The notes beneath the pieces were generated by a model, which saw only the letters and a program-made list of their open reading frames with translations, did not search any database and was not told where the DNA came from. A DNA stretch of 63,381 bases, the filler included, from Reticulomyxa filosa (lineage: Eukaryota; Protista; Foraminifera): NCBI GenBank assembly GCA_000512085.1. It is 11 parts of 11 records of this genome, joined end to end, with 100 filler letters (N's around TTAATTAATTAA, not from the genome) between each part and the next. Parts side by side here need not be neighbours in the genome. Positions count along the whole stretch, not along the records: positions 1 to 19,054 come from ASPP01000760.1; 10 more parts are not named here. One strand, given 5' to 3'. Each line of letters starts with the position of its first letter. Positions within the stretch are counted from its first letter, which is position 1. A program made the position numbers and the translations under genes. This document shows, piece by piece, positions 1 to 19,054 of this stretch.

Positions 1-1930
1 GGATGGCAAATATTCAACAGCATATATCTCGTTTGTATGTCCTTTGAAGATATGAATTTGTTTTCCTGTTCGAACATCCCACAGTCGAACTGTCTTGTCA
101 CTCGATCCAGAGCATATCACATTGCCGCCAGCAATACTTGTTTCATTTCTTGAATATTTTACATTTATTACGCAATTTTCATGTCCGTTGAAAACAATCA
201 ATTGTTTGGTGTTTTCGATATCCCACAAACGAATGGTTTTATCATACGATCCAGAGCAAATGGTATATCCAGCACCACCAATCACACCGATTTTATTAGT
301 ATCTTTACTATTACTTTGCAATGGTGAAAATTCAACACAGTAAATAGTATTTGAATGTCCTTAAAAACATGCAATGATTTCGATGTCTCAATATCCCATA
401 AACAAATGGTACTATCAGATGATCCAGAACACAAATATTTTCCACCAGTGAATGGTGAAAATTGAACGGTGAAAATACAATCACTGTGTCCTTTGAAGGT
501 CTGATATTCTTTTGCTGTTTTGATGTCCCAAAAACGGATTGTTTTGTCATATGATGCTGAACAAATGGTAGAGCGATTATGATTACGATGATATGGAGAG
601 AATTTTGCACTACGAACAGCACCTGAATGTCCATTAAAGATCTGGATTTGTTTGTCAGTATCCAAATCCCATATACGAACAGTGTTATCATGCGATCCAG
701 AGCAAAGAAATCGACCACCATCAAGTGAAGAGTATTGAAGATTACATATAAGGCTGGAGTGTCCACTAAAAATTTTGAGTAGTTTAGAAGAGCGAAGCAA
801 GTCAAAAGTGTAAGTGGAAGAGTGTTTGGAGTTGTAAGACAGAATATTATCATTTTCTTTTTGTTCATCTTTGTTGGACAGTTTTTGAATATCTTGGATG
901 AGTTTCTCATTCCTTTCTTCCAAAAGTTTAACTAATTTATCATAATGGGATAATAGCTGTTTTTCCTTTTCATTGAAATCTTTTTTGATAATTTCAATGT
1001 CAGCACGTAGTTTGAGTAATTCTTGTTGATATTCTCTTTGTATTTTTTTAATTTCATTTTCTTTTTCTGACAATTCTTTTTGTTTCAATTCCATTGTCTC
1101 ATTTATTTTGCCATTAATTGTATTGTTTCTTTCTTCAATGATGTATTTTCATTAACCAATATTTTATTTTCCTCATTCTTCATTTCATTGGATTCTACTT
1201 GTAATTTTAATTGTGTTATCTCATCCTATTTTATTTTTATTATTACTATTTGTAATTGCCTTTGTTTGCTTTTAAAAAAATGATTAACTTGATGAAGTTG
1301 GATTGTTTGTTTTAATGAATCAACAAATTTGACAACCAAATCAAAGTGTAATTTTAAATTTGAGACCAAATGTTGTTGTAATTTTTGTTTTGGACATGCA
1401 TGGACACATCCAAATGGTTTGTACCAACAATCGAATAATTTCAAAGAACAGGAATTATCCAGATGATCATTTAATTCTTTGACTTTTCCTTTAAAATCAC
1501 ATGTTACTTTTCCATTTCCTTCCTCTTCTTCTAGTTGTTGTCCTTGAGTGGTCGTCTGTGAATCTTGTTGAAATTGTCGTGGACATATAACTTGTAAATC
1601 ACCAATATGTAGTTGAGCCACTCGGCTTGGAGAATACAAACAACCATTATGAGGCTGAACAGGACAAGAATTAGAATTAATACTTAAGAATTGCTTTAAA
1701 CAATTCGCCCCAACAATAAGCGATTCATTCGAGTCTTGATGTTGTGAACAGCTTATTTCAATAGGATTTCTGGCAACTTGTTTGCAAATCAAACAAATAA
1801 AATGATTAATTTGCTCTTTCTGGTTCAATTGTAAAACCCACTCTTTACTGAAACAAGAAGTCTCTAAGTTTTCTGGAGACGCTCCAGTTTTTCTTTCTTT
1901 TGAAGTTTTTTCGTCTACTGTGCTGCTCAT
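1..1930 (-). CDS. Degenerate RING/TRAF-type zinc finger - coiled coil - WD40 repeat protein (3' end runs off the window)
   Basis: ORF 1226..1930 has CLIC...C..H...C...CP and TRAF-like CDFKGK...HLDNSC...CWYKPFGC...H motifs. Intron 1226-1288 (GT..AG) is followed by a coiled coil and GH...WD repeats (GHSSLIC...SGSHDNTVRIWD, GHSGAVR...FWD). Continuity needs single-A frameshifts at ~1114 and ~361. Confidence 0.85.
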
Positions 1931-2357
1931 TGTTCTAATGATTGCACAAAGATTATTGATTGTGTAAAGTTTTTTCTTTGAGTTTTTTTTTATGAACGAG
2001 GGAGAGCAACAACGAATTTGTGAACGAAATTAGAACAAGAATTGTGTGAGAAAATGGAGAATTTTATTTGTATACAAAAAATTAATTGTTTGAATAGTCT
2101 TTATTCACTTAGTATAAAGTTGAATGCAATAGAAAACAAACAGTTAGAAATCGCAATGGAAAATACTATTTTCAAAAGGACGATGAAAATATTGTATCAT
2201 AATCCAAGCATATTACTATCAATTTCCACAAAAAACTCTCGTTTTGTTATTTTATGGCAACAAAATGGACTTATTGAACAATTTTCATGTGAGAATTTGT
2301 AAATAATAAAATATGTTTATTTTCTTTTTGTGTTTGTTATATTTTCACATTCTTCTT

Positions 2358-2900
2358 TTATTGATAGAAAAACGATATTATCCCCAAAATGAAACGACCA
2401 TCTTTTGAACTATAACACAAATTAATATCACAATTACAATTACTTTTGTTGTCCTTTTTTAATTGTAGGAATTTAAGACAATACTCAATTATCTTTTTTT
2501 TATCTCCTTTGATCACATTCAATTCATTCTTATTTGATCGAATATCCTCATTTAATCCATATTCTATACTACTCATATCATTATGTCCATTGGAAACATA
2601 CAACGACTTGAGTGTTTCAACATCCAATAAACAAATTGTTTTGTCAAATGATCCAGAACATAAACATCTAACATCATTAACGATGACAACTCAATGCTAA
2701 ATAAAAGTAATAGTATTGGTATGATTGGTGGTAATGGATATACAATTTGTTCTGTATCAGATGATGAATTAAACAATTGATTGATTTTAAGATAAAGTGC
2801 AGTGAATATTGTAAAATATAGATCAAATGAATTAGAGATGGTGCAAATTCAATATTATCTGGTCTGAAGATTGAAGTGTTCGATAGACACGCGATTATGT
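2358..2900 (-). pseudogene. Degenerate WD40 gene remnant, paralogous to the 3' part of the 1..1930 gene
   Basis: Fragments IGMIGGNGYTICSVSDD, CLCSGSFDKTICLLDVETLK and NLCYSSKDG are spread over several frames with deletions and stops. Confidence 0.65.
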
Positions 2901-3995
2901 TGTAGGGCAAGTCCCTATTATACAATCTCAAATACTAATGGAACGGTGGGACCCCCGGTAGGTTAAAACCCTCTTCACAACTCACTTTTGTGTTTTCTTT
3001 ACTTGTTTTCTTTTCTTGTGTTGAAATTATTTTTGTTAATTTAATTTCCTTTTACTGAAGTTGCTTTTTGGAACTAAGTTCCTTTCGTGTTACACTTAGT
3101 CGCTAACTGTTCCTACAATGTGTACACTATTGAATATTCAATTTTTGTTCATTTTCCGTCAATAACTCTAAAAAACCAATGAAAACGTAAATCTGTAGTT
3201 GATGAACTATAAGTGGCTAAAAAACTCCAATTTTATATTATGAGATTGAGTTAATAAGCATGCTGTTGTAAATGGAAAATAAAAGATATTTAATTGTGGC
3301 TCTTCATCGAAAAATTAACCTTCTACATATTTAAAAATAATTCTATTAAAATAATCACTTCGTCCTAATTTTATCTTTAAAGTTTGAATCCAATGTCGAA
3401 TAGTGCATTTTATTTCATTTTTTGACTGTTCAATATTATTTATCAGCGTGCCTTACAACAATGAACCAGCTTGGAGCCACGTATTGATTTGCTCTTTTGG
3501 AAAGGCTAGAATCTTCCTCCATGATTTAGTCTAAAACCTTTTAAAGCGTGCAGTGCTGGATCATGAGTGAGAGGTCGGATGCTAATACAATCAGCAAACA
3601 AATATATTGCATTAAAGTGGTTTGATGACCAGAAAGGTGTAACATTTCGACCGTTTTAAGAACATCTTTGTTACAATAGTTTCAACGGAACACTTACTTT
3701 GTACTTGTATCGTTTGCCAAGTTCATATTACTTAATGATTTTTAGCTATTTTGTTTCATCAAGATCATAATAAATGAAAAATTATATCCTAAATATTTAC
3801 CTTTTTATTACATAAGCGAGAAACGTAAAAAAACTGCAGTATGACTATAAATTTGTTTTTTAAAACTTATCATTTTTATACTTATCGCTTCTTTTTCAAG
3901 TATAAACATTTATATATTACATTAAGGAAATAATTAACAAGTTAAACAATCTCTGTTTTTTGTCCAAAGAAACAAACGTAAAGTGAAAATATATA

Positions 3996-6900
3996 TCAAT
4001 TACATGAGCTGCGTTTAAACAACTCATAGAGATAGGCATAGCCAGTAGCGCAGTAATCCCAAGTGAGTAATTCTTTCGGAAAAAATTCCAACTCATTGTC
4101 AAAAAACATGATATTGTCTAACCAATTACTGAAGGGTTCTTTTTTGTTCAAGTCTCTTATATTTTGTCCCTCGCTTTGCACAACCTCTCTCCAGGCATCT
4201 AAAATTTGCTTTACTATTCCCAAAGGTGTCTTTTTTATCATTTCTTGCAGTTGTTGTTTTAATGAATCTGTTAAAGGTTCTCTGTACATGTCCAACACAA
4301 AATTGTTAATTGTACTTCTATCGACAAACTCCAACAGCACAGCATCGTGTAAAAGTCGCCATAAGTTGCACATATGTCTGCACAGTATGAAACCCTTTTG
4401 TTGCCCTTCCAAATTCACCAAAAATAGTTTGCAACTTTTCTCATCGAACAACATTTGTTTAAGTAACTCCACAAATTGCTTGTCTCTATGCAAAAAAAAA
4501 AAAAATTGTCAAAATATTAAGAAATACAGACCATTGTTTATTTGCGACTTAACAAATCAATAGTCTTGATATTTTGGGAAACAAAGACAATGACTTCATT
4601 TACGATTTCCAATGCCCTTTGCATTTCACTTTGAGATTTCAACGAAGAAAGAAAAGTCTTCAATAATGGCTGGTCCATTGACTCTTTTTTTTAACTCTGT
4701 ATTGTGTTCTTCGACAATGGCTACACAATTTTTGATATTTAATTGATTGGAAAACTGAAAAAAAGGAATATCAATTTCTAAGAATTGACGATTTTTAATA
4801 AATCGATAAGTAATCTCATTTTCAATAGCACTCAAATCCAAAATATTGTTTCGATTTTGATTAATGGCTCCGCATTCCAATGAGGGAAGACTCCATTGTC
4901 GAATAATTTCAGTCACCTGCGCTTTGTCCAAAAATACGACATCATTTCTGTGAATGTCGAACAGAGGCTTATTCTTGCCCATAACTTTTTGTACTTGATT
5001 GGAATCTTCATACTTCTCTTCATTGTTTGCATGCATTTTAGACTCTATCATTACACCTTCTAAAAATGCATTGTGTGCATCTTGTAACAATTGAATGATC
5101 TTCACAATAATCAATCCGTTTTCATTGTTTTGTGCAGTGGAAAACTCTAAACTAATTGAATTATCATCACACAATGCTGGAATAACGAATGACTTGCAGT
5201 CATTTTTTACCTTTTGGTTTGCCAATGCGTTCCAACATGTTTTGAAGCCACTCCATAATTGTCGGTAGGACTCCACTTCACTTTTATATCCTTTTTGTTC
5301 CCACTCTTCAATAGTCTGAGTAATGGTTTTGCCTTGGCACTCTCGCTGTGAAATTTGTCGGGAAAAGTGGAAATATACATGTTTCATCCATTGTCCAATA
5401 ACAGGCAAATATTTTACACTCCAAAGTTCATCCTTGGCACACATCACATGATACAGTAATGGATACTCACTTTCCAATGAAGGCTCAGCCATAAATCTGT
5501 GAGCTAAATCATCAAATGATATTTTATGGATAGTTAAAAACAAATGTGGGACATATTGTTCGCGATAGAATGAATCAAATTCTTTTTTTTCCTCGATTTC
5601 AGAGATCATCGCTTTCAAATCTTCCTCTTCATCTACAATAAGTTTGCTGCGATTGTTCAATTCACAGAATTGTGTGGTTTGCTCAAAAAATCCACGATAC
5701 CGGCTTTCAAACTTTTTTTCAAATTCATACGTGGTGGTAAGGTCTGTTCCATTTAATCCATTTGGATACCACTGATTGAATGTTTGTGGTAAGTTACTCA
5801 ATAATTGATGCAATGCCACAGATAAAAGCTCATCATTTAACTGAGTGATCTTTCCTAACAATCGAAAATAGCCAATTGCCTGTCTCTTCAAAAACTCAGT
5901 CACTTCTGTTGCATCCGTTTTTTGTAACAATTTTTGGAGCTCCTTGCACCCTTCTGAAATGGCTGCATTTCTGATCAACAATGCCAAATGAATCAACAAG
6001 CGTATCAATGTGCAAGATACTTCAGTGATTCGTCGAATTTGCGTAGCACCCTCGTACCTCCAAAACGAATCACCCACTGACAATTCTTCGTCTGATCCAT
6101 CCAAAATATATCCTTTAGGTATTTCTAGTTGCTTCAGTCCTGTGTCCTGACTTCTGTGAGTCTTATCACCAATTTCTCTGCCACATCCATCAACTGTACA
6201 AATTACCCTTTCTATTGGATGACCACAATTGTTGATGATGAATGGATGCATATTTGGACAATAGCGAATCGTGAAGGTGCCTCCATCTTTTCCTCCTTTC
6301 AGTGCGCGAGTTATATTCATCAGCAAATTTTCTGGCATGGATGGAAGATGACCATTCACATACTCTCCAGGATTTAAAATCAACATTCGAAATGGGTTTT
6401 CTATTTTTAAAGAAGGGTATTTTAGGGAAAAATAAAATTTAATGCACAAACTGTCTCAAAAAAAAAAAAAAAAAAAAGAAGTTGTAACTGGTCATAATTT
6501 GGAGTGCACCCAGAAAATGGAAACACAGCCTTGGAATATAGGCATCAGAAGCGTCACTGTCGTAATTCAGTCTTAAACTGGAGGCAGTTGGAGGGAGTTG
6601 TTCACTTAACAATACCTTGGCAAAGTTTTTTTCAATTTCAAAGTTTAGAACATTACATTGTAATAAATAGTCTACTGCCTCTATTTTTTGTTACAATTTT
6701 GGCAAAAGGTATATTAACTTGGACAGAAAAAACTCAATCTACAACAGAGGCACTTAACTTTTAAAATTTTCATTGAAGACAATGCCGTAGAGATTGGATA
6801 ATGACAGAGTTGCACCTAGCAATGGAATGAAATCATTTTTATCTCCATTGTACTGCATATCCATGTCATTTAGTTTATTCCTCTCAAACATTTGTTCCTA

Positions 6901-9900
6901 AAGTCAATATACTTATCTCCGTAAATGCCAATAAAAGGATCTGTACAGGGAAGATCAGATGGGCGATATTTGAATACAGAAAACACATCGCTCATTTGTG
7001 GATCAACAAAGATTGGATATCTTGCACGGATCTCTGCATTTGTGAAAAACATTTGTGTCCAATCCATGCCCTTGGCAATACAAAATTGCTTCAGGAACCA
7101 GATATGCAAACTATGCTGATAACATTTATTGAATTGGTCAAAATATATCAACAATTGAGATGTTTGATGCATTACCGCATTTAGCTTTTGATTATCCTTC
7201 ATCTCTGATATCTTAAGTGTTTTAGTAATGGACAAAATGGAGTTGATACATTGGAACAACTTTGTCTTCACATTTGAGATATTGGCAATGCTTTGATTGG
7301 GTCCATTATATTCAACATTTGGCGTATTTATATAAATACGCTCCAATACACGATTTAACAGAGTTGCTTTATACGTGTCCAATCCAAATGTATCATCGTT
7401 CCATTGATTCAGAACCAATTCCTCAAGGATTTGCAAACGGATCTTATCGGTTGCATGTTGAACACTTTGAGTCAATTCACTTGCATTGTGAAAGATATCG
7501 GTTATCACAGAGTGATAGACTCTCTTTTTATTTGGAGTGTCAAGTTCTTCAATGTTTTGTACTGTTGTTAATACATCTCGAACGAAATGTGGACGTTTGT
7601 CCAAAGCGAGATTTCCTCCTTTGAGCATACACTTTAAAATATCTGGTATCGTGTTTTTGTCATTCAACCATCCATTCTCTGATAACGACATTACACTAGA
7701 CAATGCTGTATTCAGCTTCTCTTGGCTAATCATTTGCCTTCCAAAATGTTTCGCTCCCAGGATTTGCATTTGCACTTGCCGGCACATGGCCAATATCGCA
7801 TTATATTCTTTGCAATTATCATACCAATCTTTTGCAAATTGTATAATTGTTGGAATTACACTTTCGACTGCCTCCAAACTTCTGATAATGTCACTCCATT
7901 CATTTTCTAATAACGCACATAAAAAGAAGGTAAGATTCTGATAAAGTTTTGCAGAGAAAAACAGAAAAAAACAAAAACAAGAAATGCAAAGGCAAACCAG
8001 ATGAAAATGAAATAAAATGTTTCAACAGCAAGCGAATGGAGCTACTCAGTCTTGTACTCTCATTCTCATTGTTCAATAATGTATGCAATTCCAAAACGAT
8101 GCCACTGCCATCTTGGCAAAGTTTCAAAAGTTTCACGTACGTTGCAAAAATATCAGGCAAAAAATGTAAGATGGACTCAATCATTGCAATGGATGCCTCC
8201 GAATTGAGAATGTAAATCATTGCAAACATAACCTTTGCAACGATTTCAGCCTTGTGCTGTTTCAAATTGTATTTGGCCGCAATGATATCCACAAAATACA
8301 TTCGACAATGTTCAGCATTACACATATTCAAATATTTTAATGCATTTTCACCGTCCATCATCACCTTTAGCAAATTGGAACTTTGAAGTACTTTACGATG
8401 GCTTTCTAATCTAATCTTATTTCCATTTTCGTTGTCATTGCCATTTCCATGTTGATTCTCGTATTCGTATTTATTTTCATTTTCACGTTCATTTTCTTTT
8501 ACGTCTTCATTTTCGTGGACAATTAAGTTCGATTTTTGAGCTAGAAGTTGGGTAACAGCACCGGCCAACTTGGAGTGACACCAGTTGTGCAATACGTGGC
8601 TCCATGGGAACATGGCCTCATATTGGATACTAACAGCACGTAAATCCGGCTCAATGCTCACTAATCTCTGCATTACATTTGTTAAGCAAGGGATTGTTAC
8701 CATTGAAGTATCTTGCATAACTTCCACAAACAATCGTGACAAATGCTCACAATTTTTTTCAACTGCATTAAAAAATATCTTTTTTTTTTGTACATATTAT
8801 TACGTGGTGATTTACGTAGCTTTGATTATGTATTTAATTATATCAAAAAAAAAAAAAAAAAAAAAATTTAACTTGGAAATAACAATTTTCATAAAACACT
8901 GACAAAATATTCATACAACCTATAGTCAGTAATCTGTCAATGATATTTTCATATCTTTCTAAAAAGCAACAACCCAATGATAAGACGTCTACATTACTAG
9001 GATTTTTGACTTGTATATTATTTAAAATACACGCAATTGATTTAGACACTACACCTTCTTTAAATAACTGTTTCAACCTCGACACGATTCCTTTTCGACA
9101 TTTCTCTGTCGCAATTGATTCTTTAAATAAAGTCGATAGCTGCTGTATAGCATTACCTCCATTCTTATTGACAGGGAATTGGAGCCGTGCAAATGCGCGT
9201 CGAATCGAATTGTGCAACCGACTATTTGATACATCCTTTCCAAGCACGTCGCACATGGTTTGTGAAAGTAGAGTCTTCAATTGTGCTGGCTCCGTTGAAC
9301 TTAAGCTATCAACATATGTGAATTTCCATTTTCTTGAGAAAATCAATGGAAAAGGATTCTTGAAAATTGGTGGTTTGATATGCACAAGCAAAACAGCCGA
9401 TCTTTGCCTCACTTCTTTTTCTTTTTCTTCTTTTTTGTCACAATAGTATTGATAATGTGCATGTTCTAACGTATGCTTAATGTGCATGAAATGACTGAAA
9501 TTTTTGGAGCCATGCACGTACTGCAGAATCAATAGGTCTTGAGTTGTATTATCCGAGCTGAAGAAGTGATTAATGGTCTGTTCAAAGTCACTCGACTTTT
9601 TGAATGATGCAATTTTCTTTGCTGCACCATTCCATTGATCTGGTAAATTGCACTCAAAGTCACCAGTGAGTATCAATGCCATTTGTTTGTTTGGTTCCAT
9701 TTGTTGCAGTTCGATAACTCTTCCAAAATAAGGGAATTCTTTTTGTGCAGCTTTTTCATACTCAAATTTTGCTCCTTGATCAATTGCAATTTCGAGAATG
9801 ATTTCTGGATTGCATAAAGGTTTAAATAAAGTTACAACTGCATTTTCAATTGCCTCATCAAATTCTGGTTTTTCTAATATTTCTAAATTAACAACATTAA

Positions 9901-12900
9901 ACCATTTTTGCTCTTCCTTTTTTTTTTCTGCTAAAATGTTGAACAATGCCGAAGGTATGGTGTCATTATCAAATCCACAAAACAGTTTTGCCAATTGTTT
10001 TGGAGCCACTCCGAACATTTGAGTTAATCTATCTTCTATTTTTGATATCCATGGCTCCGTTTCAGAGGGTAATGAAGTGCGATAGGATATCAACTGCTTT
10101 TCAAAACGGTTTAAAAATGCAATTGGCATTTCGGGTGCATACGCCGTATCTTTGTTAACAATTACTATGCACTTGAATTGATCCTTCACAAAACAATCCC
10201 TACTCTCACTTCCCAGAGCCACTCGACAATACATTTTTCCTATTTATTTATTTGCCTTTTTTTTTTTTTTTTTTGTTGTTGACGGTTTTTACATAAAAAT
10301 ATATCAAATTTTTAAAAATAATTTTACCAGAGGGCTTTTTTTGGTATCTCTGGTTAAGCATATCATATAAGCTTTCATAAATCGAATCCAATTTATATAA
10401 AATGACTCTTTTCCCAGTGTCCATACAATTAATGACTTTATTTAAATGTTCGTAATCCGAAATACTTGAAGTTTGATCATGTGCAAACTCACTTTTAAAT
10501 AAAAATACATCGTCATTTTTTAAAATTCCATTTTCTAACAAAACTTGCCAAGAATGCTCTAATTCACTGATCACCATACAATGACGACTGATAATATAAT
10601 TGTCTCCAAGCAGTTTTGAATTATTCGTTCGAGTATCCAAAAGATTTCGTTGAACGCAATTCATTGGCGTGAATTTACTCATTTTTTGGTAAACTACTTC
10701 TTTACTAAATCCCAACACGCTCTGAAAAATATCTCCTAAATTTTGGAGTTGGTCCTCTCTTGGAATGCCTCCAAAGTTTCTCATAAACCCTTCAAATGAT
10801 ACATTATAAGAAGGACTTTGGAGTTGGTATCGGATTAAAGAATAGAAATCACGGGCTCCAAAAAATCTTTTTTGTTCATTGATTTAAATGCTTGTGTATT
10901 GATTACTCGCTCATATACTTTGATGGCATTTTCAATTTCCTTTTCTAACCATCCGTTTATCAATTCACCTTGATATGAATTCACATTTTTTTGGTAGTGT
11001 TTCAGCATTTCCAAAGCGGTATTTTTTAACTCTTCTGTCGTCATCGGTGGGATTTGATGCATGATCACTCGATTCATTTTAGCAGCATCCAAAGGCCAAT
11101 TGGAAATTCCAACAAAAGATATCTTTGGATTTTCCAAAAGCTGATGCAATACTTTTAAAGGAGAATGCTTTGAATGTTCTGCCAATCCAATTTCGTCGAG
11201 CAACAATATAGGCTTGATTTGACTGTTCTCACTGTGACGCATTGTCTGATCCCATCGCTCTTTGATTCCTTGCGGTTTGCTATTACGAGTGCATTGGAAT
11301 GCAACGGTATGAATTGGCTTTACAGCAAATGGCAGACTATTCTTCTTTAATCTTTTTTCAAACTCCATTTTATCTTGATGCAGATTGTTACGAACAATTT
11401 GGAAAGATAGAGTCTTTGAGGTGCCTGGTTTGCCTACCAAAACAATTGGAGTGGTAGTCATAATCGACATAAATAAAATGAACAAGTTTTCTTTTAATCC
11501 TTGATTTAATGCAACTCCTGGAGGGATTGCAAATGATTTGCACAACTTGTCCACTTCTTGCTCCAAGAGTTTGGAAAATACAATATCCGCGGAGGACAAC
11601 TTTTCACTCAATTTTTGTCTTTTCTCACTATTTAATCGAAAGTAATAACATAATCCAATGGCAATGTTCAAACCTCGATCAATCCAAGGACTCTCTTTTT
11701 CATTATTCAACTCATCGCAATGCTGTTTCATTAACCACTCAAATATTTTCAAACATCTTGACACATCTCGCAATGAGACAATGATTTTATCTTTCAAACA
11801 TGTGCGTAAAAAATTTTGAGTGATTGTAATCTTTTCCAAAATTTTACTTTTCAATTTTTCAAAATCTTCATGCAATTCATCAGAAATCTCACTTTGCACT
11901 TGATTTGTCATTTCTGCAATATATTGTTGCTCATCCGAATCTGACAGTCTTCCAAATGACCATACGTACTCCTTCATGGTCTCACACAATGGATACACGC
12001 GATATACGTATTTGCTCAGTTCGTCATTTACTAACTGTCCATCATCTTCCCCATCACTCAATTTGCGTTGTCGATATGGATTGCACGCGGCAATGATTTT
12101 AATACCCTCTGGTATTTTCACTCCGTCCAATGTATGATTGCACACCAATTCATTCAGCCAACCAATATCTGGGGAAGTGTTGATTTCATCTAAAAATATC
12201 CATTGTTCTCGATCTCTCTCATTCTTTTTCTCATCGCTCTCCCATTTGTCCACACATCTTTTGACAATGTTTCGAAGATCCTCTCTTCCAAATCCACCGT
12301 GTACATCGACGGCTTGCAAGGAAATATCGGCTACTTTGGCTAGACATTTGATCAATGATGTCTTTCCACAACCTGTTTCTCCCATTAAAATAATCGGAGT
12401 ATTGGATCGTATCCTCAAATATATTGCAATCATTTTCAATATATTGTCATAAGTTAATACATAATGTCGAAACTCCCCGTCCTTCCTATTTTCGATTATC
12501 ATTTCTGGCTCTTTTTTTTCATCTGACATGAACTCCATTCCCCATAACTCCATTTTAATCTTTGTCTTTAGTGTTTCTTTTGTGCCAACAATGCGAAACA
12601 ATAGCTCTGTTCTTTTGTGTTTTTCTTCAATTTCTGCAGACATTTTTGGCATATTGTCTTTCTTTGTTAACTTAATTTTTGTAAAATGTGTATGTATACG
12701 TATGTATGTGCACAGCCTCTATTTCTCACATGTATATAATTTTATTGAAGAAAAGACCTTCCATTCGGTTGGGATTGAATCGTTTCGGGCTTTCATTTCT
12801 TCATTCCAGTTCAGGAGTGTAAAACCCAGATCGTGAAAGATTCGCAAAAAATGTCGAGATGCCAATTTTGTGTCGTTGATCAATGTTGAAATGGTACCTT

Positions 12901-15900
12901 TTTCAAGAAAGATATCGGCAAACTTAAAAAATTAAAATTTTTTAAAATTAGAAACACATTGGACAAACCTGCATCGTCCTGATTGACTAAATACAGAAAA
13001 TTTTTGGATTGTTGCCATTGCTTGCACAAATAAAACTCGTCCTCTCCTTTGCTCTCATCGACATCATCTTGGTTGTGCGCGTACAATCGACAGGAAAGAT
13101 CCGTGCTGATCGCAATAACCGACTTGGTAACTTCGTGTTTAAAGCGCAAAGGCCATTGTCGGCTTTCCTCGTCTTCATTCCGTAAAAAAACAGAGTCACT
13201 CAAGGGAACAAACTGATTAAATAGATACTTGTAAAAAGCAGTTTGATGCAATGGAGAAGCTTGTTCAATTTTTGGACAACAAGTTTTCATAATTTCAGTC
13301 ATTTCTGCGGGCTGCAGATCGACCATTTTTTTCATGTCAGGATCTTTGTCCCTATTGTTTTTATTGGTTTATTTGTTCGTCTGTTTTAATTGTGCACAAG
13401 ACAATACATGCAATCAAATTTTTTTTTTTTTTTTTTGCAAACTTTAAATTTCCAGCATTGAATTCTTTCATCCATTTGATTGCAAACCGAGCTTCTGGAC
13501 CGAATACGTACGGATTGGTTTTTTTGGACACTTTTACAATAGGAAGCTTTGCCGAAGAGAATACTGTATGCAATACCTTTTTGTAATCGTTATCAATTCC
13601 ATTCAATTTAAAAGGCATTTCAATTAAAAAGGCCATGTTCGTATTGACATGGAAACATTGTGATGCCAACACTTTCAATGTTGTGTTGACATGCTGCAAA
13701 AATAACAGCTCAAAAAAAAACGTATTTGCTGAAGCTGAAATACAAGAGGAAATATCCAAATGATATACTACCAGATTATCAACATGATAATTGAGTTTGA
13801 AACATTTGGTTTTGATATCAATTAAATTGTTTTGCACTTGCTCCTCAATTGTGCAAGGATGATGCCTCCAAAGCCCTTCCATTATACTTTTCCAATCCAT
13901 TGTGCCACTATTGAGTGCGATGCGCACTGCTTGCACCTTTGGATTCATACTTCGAATTGATTCAATATCTTGTTCAATCTTGAAGCTTTTGCCCATACCA
14001 ATTTGGTCAGAGATATACAATTGCACAAATGGCTTGTTGTTGTTGTTGTTGTTATTGAGATTGACAGAAGAATTTTGCAAAGCAAATGCTTTCAAATCGT
14101 TACAATACAATTGCTGAATTAAGAGATTTGGAGTCTGTTCGTTCATGGCAATACGCTTAGACAAGCGAAAGGGATTCAGTTTTTGAGATAGCATATTGTC
14201 GAGCGAGTTTGACATAACAATTAATAGATACGGAATTTTTTTTAGGTCGTCCAACGCTTTTTGACTTAATAACAAATTATGAAATAACTTGGTAACTGGC
14301 TCCAATGTTTCAAGTGGTAACATTTCCGGCCACATTAAGCAATACAATGAAGGGTGGGCTTGATTGGCCGAAGTAATGGCTCGGAACAGCAAGCATTCGA
14401 TTTCCTCTTCCGTCGTATTTTCTTTGCATATTAAAATGTGCTCGATACGAGGAGTGACTCCAAAATTTCTGAACAGCTCTAAAATATCAAGCATTTTATC
14501 ATAATCTTGAATTATTAAATTAGGTTTGCTATATTCAAGTCCGCAGAAGGGTTTATTACAATATACGTCATTAGAGTGTCTCAAATTAGTCCAAATTTTG
14601 GAAAACACAGCTCCGAATTGACTCAATACCTTATCCCCTTGTGCAGGTTCACATTCCCATTTTTCGACAAAAGGTAAGACATTGGAGAGAGTGGAGTCAA
14701 TACGTTGCAAAAATGGTAAAATAAATTTGGAGCAAAGTATTGCTCGATGTTCTTGGGCACAGTTTATAATATCATTTAATTTTTGAGAAAGACAACGTAC
14801 TTCATTGAATGTAAAGTAATTCAATATTGGATACTCTTTCCTAAATTTCACACATTCATTTTGCCAATTTTCTAATCTTTTTTTCCATTCGCTGTGCAGA
14901 TCTTTAAACTCTGCCAATGTCTTTTTCACGGACAAATGCAACTTGTCTGTCGCTTGTCGGCCACCTTTCCTCCAAAACATCGCTCGTAATGTTTCAATAT
15001 CCTTGCACACTCCAAACTTTTCAATCAGACTCTGTATCTTTTTCAACTCCTTTTCTTTGGAAAATCCCAATAATACACGATCAATGGCCTGTTCAAGTTG
15101 ATCGCAATTCAGTGTTTGTGATTTACTTTGATCGTTGATGGCTCCAATTTGCAAGATGAGCCTTTCACTTGTCTGTCCTTTCTCTTGCAATACTTGGTCG
15201 CATCCGGCAAAAGTCCATTGGGCATTTTGCGTTGCCTTTTCCAATATACGAAGGCTTTGAGAAGCTTGAAATCGATCTGCTTCATCGACAAGCAAAGAGA
15301 TACGATACAGATTCTCGCTGCAGCACTTTTTAAATTTGGCAGTGAAATCATTATCACGTTTGTGAATTTCCAAAATTGCTTTTGCAACTTGACTTGTCTC
15401 TTTTAAATCGGCATCCCAAATATGCTCGCGGATATTTTCATTGACTGCACGCAATGCACCTACCAATTGTTGGAAGTGGATTTCATTGCAATTGTCCAAT
15501 GTTTCCATTGTGTTTGCAAAATGCTCTTTGTTTGCAAAGTTTTGATTGGTTGCCAATTGTTTGATCAAGCCTTCATCATGTTTCGTAATCAGATCCAACA
15601 ATGTCTCACACTCCGAAACTTTATCACCAAAGCATCTCATGCATTCGTCATAACATGCGGACAAGTATTGAAGTGAAGACTCTTTACCTTCAATTGCGTT
15701 AACACTGTTCCGCAATGACTGCACAAAACGATACCAAGTGTCATCGGTTTTTATTGTGCAATTTAATTTGTGATATTTTTTTAAAATTTCGGTGGCTTTT
15801 TCCAGCTTTGTCCAGGGAATCACCATTTCTTTTAATTGTTTACTCTTTTCACATTCTTTACAGAAATCCTTTGCCATCAATTGCCTTTGTTGCTCAGACC

Positions 15901-18900
15901 AGCTTGGAAACAAAAACTTCAATTCCGAATGCAAATCATCTCCTTTGAACCATCTCAAATCTTCCACAGAATGTTTTTTTTCTAGCCTCTGTATCAACTC
16001 CCTCCATTCTTTGCTTACTTGAGAATAAAGTTTGTCAATACTCAATTTTTCTTGCTTTTTCATTTCTTCTCGACGCATACTCCATAACCTTTTAAACGCA
16101 TAGCTGTCTTGCATATTTGCCAAATGTTCCATTATGTCTTTCTGTTTTTGATACATCTTATGTTCATTCTGATATCTCTGACTTGCTTTTGGAAATGACT
16201 CCAAATCCCAATTGCTACACAAATTACCAAATTCGTTTAACCGTGCAGAGAAATCATTACGTGTCATATAATTTGTCAACAACATTTTATACAACGGCTT
16301 CAACCACACAAAATTTCTGTAGTCTTCCAACATGGTCCATAATGCATTGACTCTGTTTTTTGCAGTCTTGTTGTTTTTCCATCTAGGCAAAGATTGGCTT
16401 ATGGTTTCAATGTTACGTGCGTTGTCATCACGATGAAGAAGCTCGCATACACAAAATGTAATTGACTTATTTTCAATCATTACAAACAACTCCTCTAATG
16501 TCATTTCCACAAAGTTCTGCAAGTGTTTCAATCTTTCTACTTTCTTTAATCTATGTCCAAGCAATGGCAGCCATGGAATACACAAAAAGCAATACTCCAA
16601 ATGACATACCAATTTGTTTTTGTTTACTTTTTCTTCATTGTCCTCGCTTTCTTCATCTTCGTGTTCTTTCTTTTCCTCGATTGCATTCTTGCCTTTGTTG
16701 GCATCTCCTTTGCTTATACTGGACTCCATTTGAACGGGAAGGTCCACAATCACTTTAAATATTTCGTTCAATAATTTCAAATCAGTACATGTCCGTGCTG
16801 GCTCCAAAAATTTTCGCATTGACTCCAAAGATTTGTTGCTCCATTTCTGTTGGCTTAGCAATATTGTCTCTTTTTTCTTTTTAATTTCAGTTAAAAAAAT
16901 GTCTTTGTATTCACCGGGAAGACTCCAAAATCCTGAATGAGATATGAAATACATAAGCCGTCGAGGAGGATCAATATTTTTGCCTATCAAGTTGTCGCTT
17001 ATCCAGTCAATCAAACTTTGGGCCAACAAGTTTTTCAAAGTGTCTTTTTTTTCTTTTTGCGCTTGATACGTAAACAATTTCAGCCACAATCCGAAAGAAC
17101 TCTCATTTGATAGAAGACGCTTTTGCAATCTCTCAAACGCATCCTTGGCTGGTCTTTCAACAGATATATGACCAAATGAACAAAGTACACCAAAAATAGC
17201 CTTTAATGTATACGCGTCATAAATCATTTCCGTTTTGTCAATGTAATAATCCAGTGTTTGCAATACACTTTCCCAACCTTGCCAAATCACATCTTTGTGT
17301 CTCAGCATAAAATAAATGAAAGCAACGAAATTCTTATTTACTTTAACCACCGTATTTCGAAATTTATTGTCATCGAATATGTTCAACAATCTTTTGCGGA
17401 CTTGTTCATCCTTTAGCATGTCTATGATTTGAGGTCTCTCTACAAACTGGCTCCATTTTCCAAATTCCTGTTTGTACAAATTGCAAATGATGTGAACGAA
17501 TTTCGAGTCTTGGTTTATCCACAGTTTGATCCACGTCTCCATCGTCATAATATCTTTATTAGATAGCAAAAGATTCAATATCTCTTCGGATAGACTGTCA
17601 TTTTTTTGAAAATACAATATTTGCATTAAATATTCCACTGCGCATAATCTTGCATTAATATTGAGTAAACATCGAATTTGTTGATCCATCTCGACAACTT
17701 CTACATACCTTGCAGCGATATGCGGCACTTTGTTAAAAAGTTGGAGGTCGAAACTTTTCAAAAGCTCATTATTTGCTTGTGCGTTACAACTGCTTGCCAA
17801 AAGATTGAAACAAGGAATCAACATAAACAATTGAAAACCCTCTGCTTTGGCATGCTCCTTTTCCCCACGTATATTATGTTCCAAGTCACTCCAAAACACT
17901 TTTCTCGCAGTTTCAATTATGTTGCGTGTTTGTGTTGTCACCACACATTTCAACGCAACAAACAACTGCGGTGGAGACAGATATTGTCGTTGCTCTTCAA
18001 GTTGTTCATTTACAAATATAATTTGACAGATCATTTTTTTGCAAAAAAAGAAAAACCAGATTTGTACATTTACATATATGTATATATATACGTATACATA
18101 AGTCTTAACTAGTTTAATGTTTGCTTCGTTTTTATCAAACTGACTTATTATTCTTTGAGATATGCTTTGGAGATCTTTGATAGGCTTTTGAATCACTTCG
18201 ACCATATCACGCATAGCTTGCTGTGCAAATTGAAGTGACTCATTGTCGCCAATGCTTTCTATTAGATGACGAACCACAAAGGTATCTAGGGATTGAGAGT
18301 TATTTTGCACAATGCTATCTTGGAGATCGAACAAAATCTTCCGAGCTTCTAGCAAGTAACCTTGCGTTTTCAATTCAACAAAATAGGCACACTTGTGAGT
18401 CTCAATGTCAATGGATGTGCGTAAGGTGTGATATTTAATATCAACAGTCCAAAAAGTGTTCTTTTTTACTCGAAAATCATTCATGTACAAAAACGTAGGG
18501 TTATCGCTTGCGGGTTTCATTTGATACCATAACTCTACGTAAAAAAAAATTTTTTTTATCCAATAAAGAGCTACTCCAAAAAAAAAAAAAAAAAAAACTT
18601 TTTGGAATCACGACAATCGGCGTGTTTGTATCGTCTGGCTTGATTTCACGACAGAAAACATAAATTCTCACAATCTTGAAAGTATCATCGTTGACATATC
18701 CACTTGCGATGGCAAAATTTGCTTGTGCCTCACAACAGTCCATTTTCTCTTCAAGGAAAATATCGTCACACTTTTGTAACAAACATTGGCGATTGCTTTC
18801 TTCGGTCATCTCATGAAATTCATCCACGACTTTGAGCAGCTTCACGAGTTCTTCATTTTCTCCACTAGCATTTGTAAAATTTGTCTTTTCGTCGTCGTCG

Positions 18901-19054
18901 TCGTGTTTATCTTCTTTTGCATCTTGATTTCGTCTTGAAGAAGACAATGCACGCAACAGTGGATTCGGCGCTTGGCATGGCTTGCAAATGCATCGCACGA
19001 GTATCTCTTTGGCCAAATCCAATTGAATGGCTTTCTTTTTCCACATCACTTGCT
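3996..19054 (-). CDS. RNF213/mysterin-like giant AAA+ ATPase - RZ-finger E3 ubiquitin ligase (5' truncated, >~4,700 aa, multi-exon)
   Basis: RNF213-like motifs occur in the expected order: ISDQIGMGKS, VVYHLDISS..FFFELLFL, YVLTYDNILKM, GETGCGKT (Walker A, ~12360-12383), FLDEIN, AACNPY, VYRVYPL, VSLRDVSRC, GKPGTSKT (~11414-11437), LLLDEIGLAEHSKHSPLKVLH, GISNWPLDAAKMNR, FFGARDFY, RNFGG, YESLYDMLNQ, AFLNRFEK, LPSMPE, the RZ finger (6156-6260) and C-terminal FFP. Frame-preserving GT-AG introns: 18535-18598, ~18000-18110 (uncertain), 13352-13442, 12898-12968, 12671-12757, 10240-10327, 8779-8872, 7907-7997, 6681-6758, 6401-6488, 4486-4553. Frameshifts at 10860-10865, 6891-6893 and 4685-4692. Confidence 0.92.
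6156..6260 (-). other. RZ-type (RNF213/ZNFX1) zinc finger within the giant gene
   Basis: CPNMHPFIINNCGHPIERVICTVDGCGREIGDKTH matches the RZ pattern CPxxHx6CGxPx5Cx2-4Cx3IGx3H. Confidence 0.9.

Follow-up and report, generated by a model that had tools for sequence, protein, structure and literature searches.

A predicted giant RNF213-family protein with an AAA+ ring and an RZ finger, and without a RING, in the foraminiferan Reticulomyxa filosa

Vertebrate RNF213 (mysterin), the Moyamoya gene, is a sensor that ubiquitylates lipopolysaccharide, and to our knowledge RNF213 has been studied almost only in vertebrates. Here, we describe an RNF213-like locus of Reticulomyxa filosa, a bacterivorous, syncytial amoeba that is a phagotroph and not a genetic model. 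The locus comprises positions 1-19054 of the window (the whole stretch of DNA that was analyzed, 63,381 nucleotides, nt), which is the whole contig ASPP01000760.1 (C760). This contig has a GC content of 28-38% and belongs to a draft assembly of 101.9 Mb in 50,809 contigs, from a genome of ~35% GC. Judged from its sequence, C760 probably carries one multi-exon, minus-strand gene for a giant AAA+/RZ protein of the RNF213 family (at least 4,777 amino acids, aa; N-terminally truncated) that is without a RING.

The C760 protein has in common with vertebrate RNF213 (PDB 6TAX, 7OIK, 8S24, and 9G08) its giant size, a dynein-like AAA ring with similarity in AAA1-2 and with AAA3 and AAA4 modules that are equipped for catalysis, an RZ finger that has a Cys nucleophile and a His base besides its four metal ligands, and ~400 residues of E3-shell/C-terminal similarity around this finger. 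These parts follow the same order, with a distance from AAA4 to the RZ finger of ~1,480 residues in the C760 protein and ~1,600 residues in human RNF213. In contrast to RNF213, the C760 protein has no RING and no detectable CBM20 or N-arm similarity. The stretch from the AAA ring to the RZ finger and the last ~220 residues are not recognizably RNF213-like, and the region that is most similar to vertebrate RNF213 is only ~35% identical. The gene numbers differ as well, with at least ~30 paralogs in Reticulomyxa and one or two RNF213 genes in vertebrates.

The RZ finger of ZNFX1, an SF1 (superfamily 1) helicase with NFX1-type zinc fingers, belongs to the same Pfam family, but the ZNFX1 motor differs from the dynein-like AAA ring of the C760 protein. 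No Pfam match to a ZNFX1-type helicase core or to NFX1 zinc fingers was found in the C760 protein beyond generic P-loop matches in its segment D (see below). Midasin and the dynein heavy chain also have a concatenated AAA+ ring in one polypeptide. However, their similarity to the C760 protein is restricted to the P-loop level, and the latter is without a MIDAS domain, a microtubule-binding stalk, and a linker; outside the AAA modules, no Pfam MIDAS or dynein-specific families were found in its segments. A literature search retrieved no paper that joins RNF213 with Reticulomyxa, Dictyostelium, Tetrahymena, Acanthamoeba, Naegleria, or choanoflagellates. Few papers named both RNF213 and protists, and none of these discussed homologs.

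RNF213-like and RNF213-unlike regions of the predicted protein

Minus-strand open frames were chained from 19052 (contig end) down to the stop codon 3996-3998, which gave stop-to-stop segments named A to L, and homology searches were run exon by exon, with each segment separately. The AAA3 and AAA4 modules are located in exon 5 (segments D and E, 10328..12657). Segment D matched all solved human and mouse RNF213 chains over query residues 62-540 (E 2.5e-66 to 6e-64, PDB phmmer), and it also matched the Pfam families AAA, AAA_5, and AAA_7. The Walker A (GETGCGKT) and Walker B (FLDE) motifs of AAA3 aligned with human K2426/E2488, and those of AAA4 (GKPGTSKT and LLDE) aligned with human K2775/E2845; for these residue numbers, the 40-residue tag offset of 9G08 was subtracted. 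The roles of these Walker residues in RNF213 have been described (PMC11549300).

The similarity continued on both sides of segment D. Exon 2 (segment B, ~1,712 codons, 13398..18534) encodes an N-terminal helical arm, followed by AAA1-AAA2 in its last ~400 residues. A profile of B residues 1032-1723 (the last ~700), built together with paralogs and the metagenomic relative P0009, matched mouse RNF213 1764-2067 (E 6e-28), colinear with the AAA3-4 match. Segment E, which forms one open frame with D in the paralog ETO01874.1, continued colinearly into 209 long RNF213-like proteins (phmmer against long homologs). Segment F (exon 6, 8873..10239), where the AAA ring continues into the AAA5-6 region, followed E colinearly in 79 long RNF213-like proteins (best E 5e-18, phmmer). 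Segments B and F alone had no PDB match by phmmer.

The RZ finger proper (CPNMH...C...C..C...H, 6144..6275) lies inside exon 10 (segments J and K, 4554..6400), together with the flanking E3-shell/C-terminal region. Segment J matched the Pfam family ZnF_RZ-type (PF20173) at 4e-10, with 39.6 bits against a cut-off of 27. In the PDB search, its query residues 18-414 aligned with human RNF213 4463-4844 (E 3e-10), an alignment of ~400-450 residues that lie after and around the RZ finger. In RNF213, the RZ metal ligands are C4505, H4509, C4525, and C4528, the nucleophile is C4516, and the base is H4537 (PMC11549300). Equivalents of all six of these Cys/His residues are present in the C760 protein, and the same six are kept in the paralogs C28422, C26980, and C1449. 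The neighbors of segment J in ESM Atlas were clusters labeled "RN213 ligase (Fragment)" (feature score 0.95; structure template-modeling score, TM, 0.52). In contrast to these RNF213-like regions, the last ~220 residues (segments K and L) had no RNF213 match, and a paralog-built profile of L was without a PDB match.

The region at the position of the RNF213 RING and E3 shell is encoded by exon 8 (segments H and I1, 6759..7906) and is all-helical. RINGs were not detected by Pfam in any segment of the gene, CxxC-rich stretches were absent from segments F-I, and a relaxed RING-like Cys/His pattern was found neither in the window nor in ten paralog contigs, with all six frames searched. A hidden RING exon is unlikely because the introns at the expected position are <100 nt long, which is too short. 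The RING is absent from the gene.

Profiles of G and H, built with paralogs, had no PDB match. The model of segment H was all-helical (predicted local distance difference test, pLDDT, 84.5), and both Foldseek-PDB and VIA-align matched it to generic helical proteins only, a result that does not show that the folds differ. The H region was weakly and colinearly linked to P0009 only (E 0.001). Overall, two regions are helical, one of ~1,300 residues at the N-terminus and one of ~700 residues (G, H, and I) that precedes the RZ exon, and neither had RNF213 similarity that was detectable by profile and fold searches. For the N-terminal arm, the profiles of B160-660 and B660-1030 (with paralogs) gave no RNF213 match in the PDB. 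The B160-660 model was an all-helical, ARM/HEAT-like solenoid (pLDDT 71.8), and its fold search returned ARM/HEAT-like matches only, at TM ~0.25, which likewise is no proof of a different fold. For the N-terminal 1,100 residues, ESM Atlas gave no usable match. No Pfam match to CBM20 was found in A or B, with the extreme N-terminus located beyond the contig and B660-1030 not folded.

An earlier note on this DNA had claimed RNF213 motifs in colinear order from the AAA core to the C-terminus, and indeed three PDB-matched regions occur in the RNF213 order and with similar spacing. Its wider claim of a full RNF213 architecture holds for the AAA core and for the RZ finger with ~400 flanking residues. 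It does not hold for the RING, which is missing, for the N-arm and the pre-RZ region, where no homology was found, or for CBM20, which was not found.

The predicted gene, its paralogs, and its relatives

All segments and exons of the gene are on the minus strand. The stop-to-stop segments are A (19052-18504), B (18607-13364, 1,748 aa), C (13368-12883), C2 (12931-12722), D (12718-10838), E (10883-10251), F (10243-8846), G (8796-7903), H (8021-6873), I1 (6897-6757), I2 (6690-6442), J (6455-4629), K (4690-4541), and L (4508-3999). Exon borders were predicted from the ends of paralog homology and from frame-compatible GT..AG pairs. The predicted gene consists of ~11 exons with a total of 14,330 nt. 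Three frameshifts in the chain need a net addition of 1 nt, which gives 14,331 nt, or exactly 4,777 codons. This number is a minimum, as the 5' end of the gene is lost at the contig end (19054), where frame A is still open; two paralogs remain similar to each other for another ~1.5 kb upstream of segment A.

Exon 1 (segment A, 18599..19052) is incomplete at the contig end, with the true N-terminus beyond it, and is conserved with C33963 (62% identity) and C28422. Exon 3 (segment C, 12958..13351) is kept in paralogs and in P0009, and exon 4 (segment C2, 12730..12922), which has the downstream donor GTGAGA at 12729, is kept in paralogs. Exon 7 (segment G, 7998..8778) encodes a helical, paralog-conserved region with an E/N-rich low-complexity insert, which arises from 16 copies of a degenerate tandem 6-mer ATTTTC (8419-8514). 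Exon 9 (segment I2, 6489..6680) is kept in three paralogs; a GTTAAG donor is located at 6758, and the introns here are predicted. Exon 11 (segment L, 3996..4485) encodes the C-terminal ~162 residues and includes the stop codon, and it is conserved to its end in five paralogs. From donor to acceptor, the ten predicted introns are 18598-18535 (64 nt), 13397-13352 (46 nt), 12957-12923 (35 nt), 12729-12658 (72 nt), 10327-10240 (88 nt), 8872-8779 (94 nt), 7997-7907 (91 nt), 6758-6681 (78 nt), 6488-6401 (88 nt), and 4553-4486 (68 nt). In several of them, the donor is GTTAA or GTAAA and the 3' end is rich in T.

The A-to-L order on one strand was repeated on eight further contigs (C28422, C33963, C26980, C1449, C46428, C1149, C37485, and C38546), at identities from ~80% down to 25-30%. 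This repetition within one genome speaks for a single gene unit, and the locus 19052-3996 would be transcribed into a single mRNA. The proposal of the earlier note that the open reading frames (ORFs) splice into one protein of >~4,700 aa is supported by the minus-strand frames, the predicted 4,777 codons, and the order kept on the eight contigs. The frames of its exon chain were found where it had placed them, but the junctions D/E, H/I1, and J/K turned out to be 1-nt frameshifts and not introns. Its expectations of a foraminiferan host and of genes split by annotation were both correct: the database proteins closest to segment D are the paralogs ETO01874.1 (RFI_35566) and ETO35633.1 (RFI_01430) of Reticulomyxa filosa in GenBank, where paralogs are annotated as nothing more than partial "hypothetical protein" fragments. 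An exact look-up of the AAA ORF gave no record.

With at least ~30 paralogs, this gene family is an expansion specific to Reticulomyxa, which the earlier note had missed. Among 315 first-look candidates, the AAA core ORF had at least 84 scored matches on ~70 contigs (41-81% identity). The AAA4 Walker A region was covered by at least ~30 separate loci, and the RZ model detected 31 loci in the genome. On four contigs, AAA and RZ were found 4.5-6 kb apart on the same strand. Among the paralogs, divergence was greatest in the N-terminal third (45% identity to C28422) and in G/H (57-58%), and smallest in D, E, F, J, K, and L (70-87%).

A quick maximum-likelihood tree was calculated for the AAA3-4 region, and it should be read with caution, as it has long branches and is without a vertebrate sequence or an outgroup. 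In this tree, 13 of the 14 Reticulomyxa copies formed one clade outside the animals (Shimodaira-Hasegawa-like approximate likelihood ratio test, SH-aLRT, 100). The remaining copy, C5072, grouped with the metagenomic P0009 and P0068 (97). The Reticulomyxa copies, the C5072/P0009/P0068 group, and Diplonema were split (99) from animals, Glomeromycota, and Tetrahymena. The C5072 copy (G000:C5072:5602-10490) represents a second, deeply divergent RNF213-like subfamily, which is 33-37% identical to the C760 copy in the AAA core; the main Reticulomyxa clade is more distant from it than P0009 and P0068 are.

In other organisms, the AAA core matched 832 representative clusters at E <= 1e-30. The named members with this core include many invertebrates, Glomeromycota (Diversispora and Entrophospora), Tetrahymena malaccensis, Diplonema papillatum, and Diphylleia rotans. 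The presence of a RING or an RZ finger in the long homologs was judged by Pfam scans. An RZ finger without a RING was found in Diplonema (KAJ9468376.1, E 1.4e-12), in P0009, and in Diphylleia (EP00002_P032595, 25.1 bits, just below the cut-off). Like C760, these three have an AAA core followed by an RZ finger and no RING. Unlike C760, they are single uninterrupted ORFs or transcripts, with the AAA core and the RZ finger within 3,510 aa (P0009), 5,181 aa (Diplonema), and 4,817 aa (Diphylleia), with no documented large expansion.

P0009 is colinear with the C760 protein from AAA1 through the pre-RZ helical region and is its closest full-length colinear relative. It comes from L011 (ENA ERZ23488602, scaffold_14, 49.8 kb), a metagenomic contig that is dense in genes and apparently free of introns, on which two giant AAA+RZ genes (3,510 and 4,843 aa) lie beside FHA- and BRCT-domain genes. 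The source of this contig may be an intron-poor protist or a giant virus.

By identity (~40%), the closest AAA cores are those of the RNF213-like families of amphioxus, echinoderm, coral, Lingula, and Diversispora. Similar to the C760 family, the invertebrate and glomeromycotan proteins are long (3,000-5,700 aa) and often multi-copy, but they form clades separate from the Reticulomyxa copies. Neither an RZ finger (E <= 0.01) nor a RING was found in the amphioxus (P0020 and P0164), Diversispora, and Tetrahymena members tested. The same holds for the metagenomic P0011 and P0014, the AAA cores of which group with echinoderms in the tree. The Tetrahymena malaccensis protein P0008 (KAL4475077.1, 7,271 aa) contains two nearly identical RNF213-like AAA cores (~2149-2650 and ~6144-6661) and may be a tandem duplicate that was fused by annotation. 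In the parts of P0008 that were scanned, neither an RZ finger nor a RING was found.

Downstream of the RNF213-like gene and on the same strand, a separate neighbor gene that is not part of it lies at 285..2029 (minus strand), possibly continuing to position 1. Its product combines a TRAF-type zinc finger (Pfam zf-TRAF, 4.8e-7) and WD40 repeats (3e-24) with a RING-like CxxC..CxH motif and a coiled coil. This TRAF-like architecture adjoins the RNF213-like gene, and WD40-like fragments also occur at 2361-2934. Among the paralog contigs, WD40 was found downstream only on C46428, on the opposite strand, so these contigs did not show a conserved linkage of this neighbor.

Alternative readings of the locus

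The separate partial proteins (480-1,600 aa) of the GenBank paralog models would also be expected if the locus consisted of several independent head-to-tail genes, for an N-terminal helical protein, an AAA ATPase, and an RZ-finger protein. We consider such an arrangement very unlikely. The order and spacing of the segments are kept on the eight paralogous contigs even at 25-30% identity, the gaps between segments are only 35-94 nt long, with GT..AG ends and frame-compatible joins, and only the first segment has room for its own promoter or start. Moreover, the stretch from AAA to RZ is contained in single ORFs of P0009, Diplonema, and Diphylleia. There is even less reason to regard the locus as coding for a generic dynein/midasin AAA+ protein or as a contaminant animal sequence, although midasin and dynein were among the PDB matches of segment D and the named relatives with the highest identity are invertebrate animals. 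The midasin match had an E-value of 2e-18 and was confined to the P-loop (query 80-120), compared with 2.5e-66 over ~480 residues for RNF213, and the similarity to RNF213 is not limited to the AAA core, as the RNF213-specific RZ finger and ~400 flanking C-terminal residues match as well. In the tree, the Reticulomyxa copies are placed apart from the animals in a clade of their own, and ~70 contigs of the same 35% GC genome, assigned to R. filosa in GenBank, carry copies. The RNF213 E-values, the RZ region, and the separate clade effectively refute both the midasin/dynein identity and the animal contamination.

Two observations weigh against an intact giant RNF213-family gene at C760. Segments G, H, and L and residues 1-1030 of B have no detectable RNF213 similarity, so about half of the protein is tied to RNF213 by position only. 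In addition, the copy differs from its paralogs by three 1-nt frameshifts and may be a recently decayed pseudogene. The frameshift D/E near 10868, in exon 5, has one base fewer than three paralogs and is located at an A/T run; H/I1 near 6880, in exon 8, has one base fewer than the paralogs and is outside any homopolymer; J/K near 4686, in exon 10, has one extra A compared with the paralogs, in an A8 run. They are either draft-assembly errors or signs of recent decay. That they are real, and that this non-functional copy gives no full-length protein, is possible but in our view doubtful. The H/I1 indel outside a homopolymer is in line with decay, large families commonly hold decayed members, and the paralog C26980 has eight frame changes within segments. 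However, two of the three indels are at A/T runs, and there is no in-frame nonsense codon within any homologous segment, including the open 1,748-codon frame. The ratio of nonsynonymous to synonymous substitution rates (dN/dS) compared with paralogs was 0.15-0.40 in all segments tested (B, D, F, H, J, and L, which include non-AAA segments), and the gene family is under purifying selection. Frame changes were also found in most of the paralog contigs (one to eight in C26980, C1149, C28422, C33963, and others) within segments that are open in C760. These reflect either widespread draft indel errors or many decaying copies. Because they sit at differing positions in most paralog contigs, the pattern expected of indel errors in an assembly of 50,809 contigs, indel errors are suggested.

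Proposed mechanism and significance

The best-supported reading is that the C760 protein would be a RING-less, ATP-regulated giant E3 ubiquitin ligase of the RNF213 family that loads ubiquitin on its RZ cysteine. From the N-terminus on, a helical arm would be followed by a dynein-like AAA+ ring, an E3 region that is helical and RING-less, the RZ finger, and a C-terminal domain. If the protein works as RNF213 does, it would be switched or recruited when AAA3/AAA4 bind or hydrolyze ATP. A charged E2 (ubiquitin-conjugating enzyme) would be held by the shell around the RZ finger together with the C-terminal domain, and ubiquitin would be transferred to the RZ cysteine and from there to the substrate. 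Deletion of the RING does not affect bacterial ubiquitylation by RNF213 (PMC11549300), and the E2 is recruited by the E3 shell and the C-terminal domain of RNF213 (PMC11549300; PMC13015453). Since the RING of RNF213 is dispensable and the E2 is recruited by these other parts, the RING-less form is plausibly active.

We infer the E3 activity and the substrates of the C760 protein from its likeness to RNF213. The expansion pattern and RNF213 biology together point to a putative immune role, with the marking of microbes. Among the paralogs, the N-terminal arm and the helical region before the RZ finger diverge fastest, as would fit a diversified role in recognition or defense. A more far-reaching hypothesis, which we regard as speculative and unlikely to be correct in all its parts, is that AAA-ring + RZ ligases are ancient pan-eukaryotic cell-autonomous immune sensors. 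Their ancestor would have been without a RING, which would have been added later in the animal RNF213 line. The Reticulomyxa copies with their fast-diverging N-arms would then constitute an NLR-like receptor repertoire, which would attach ubiquitin to the non-protein surfaces of microbes that invade or are ingested.

The catalytic core, with two active-type AAA modules and a complete RZ finger with its flanking shell, is kept in Rhizaria, and the RING-less layout is also found in Discoba (Diplonema) and CRuMs (Diphylleia). This protist layout supports the dispensability of the RING and suggests that the ligase site was ancestrally located in the RZ finger. It further places the origin of the family near the base of the eukaryotes, unless several transfers took place. 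The relevance for the evolution of cell-autonomous immunity is moderate to high, tempered by the draft quality of the locus. With at least ~30 copies, conserved enzymatic parts, and fast-changing arms, the Reticulomyxa family has the pattern of immune receptor families, and the question of how phagotrophic protists mark intracellular microbes becomes approachable.

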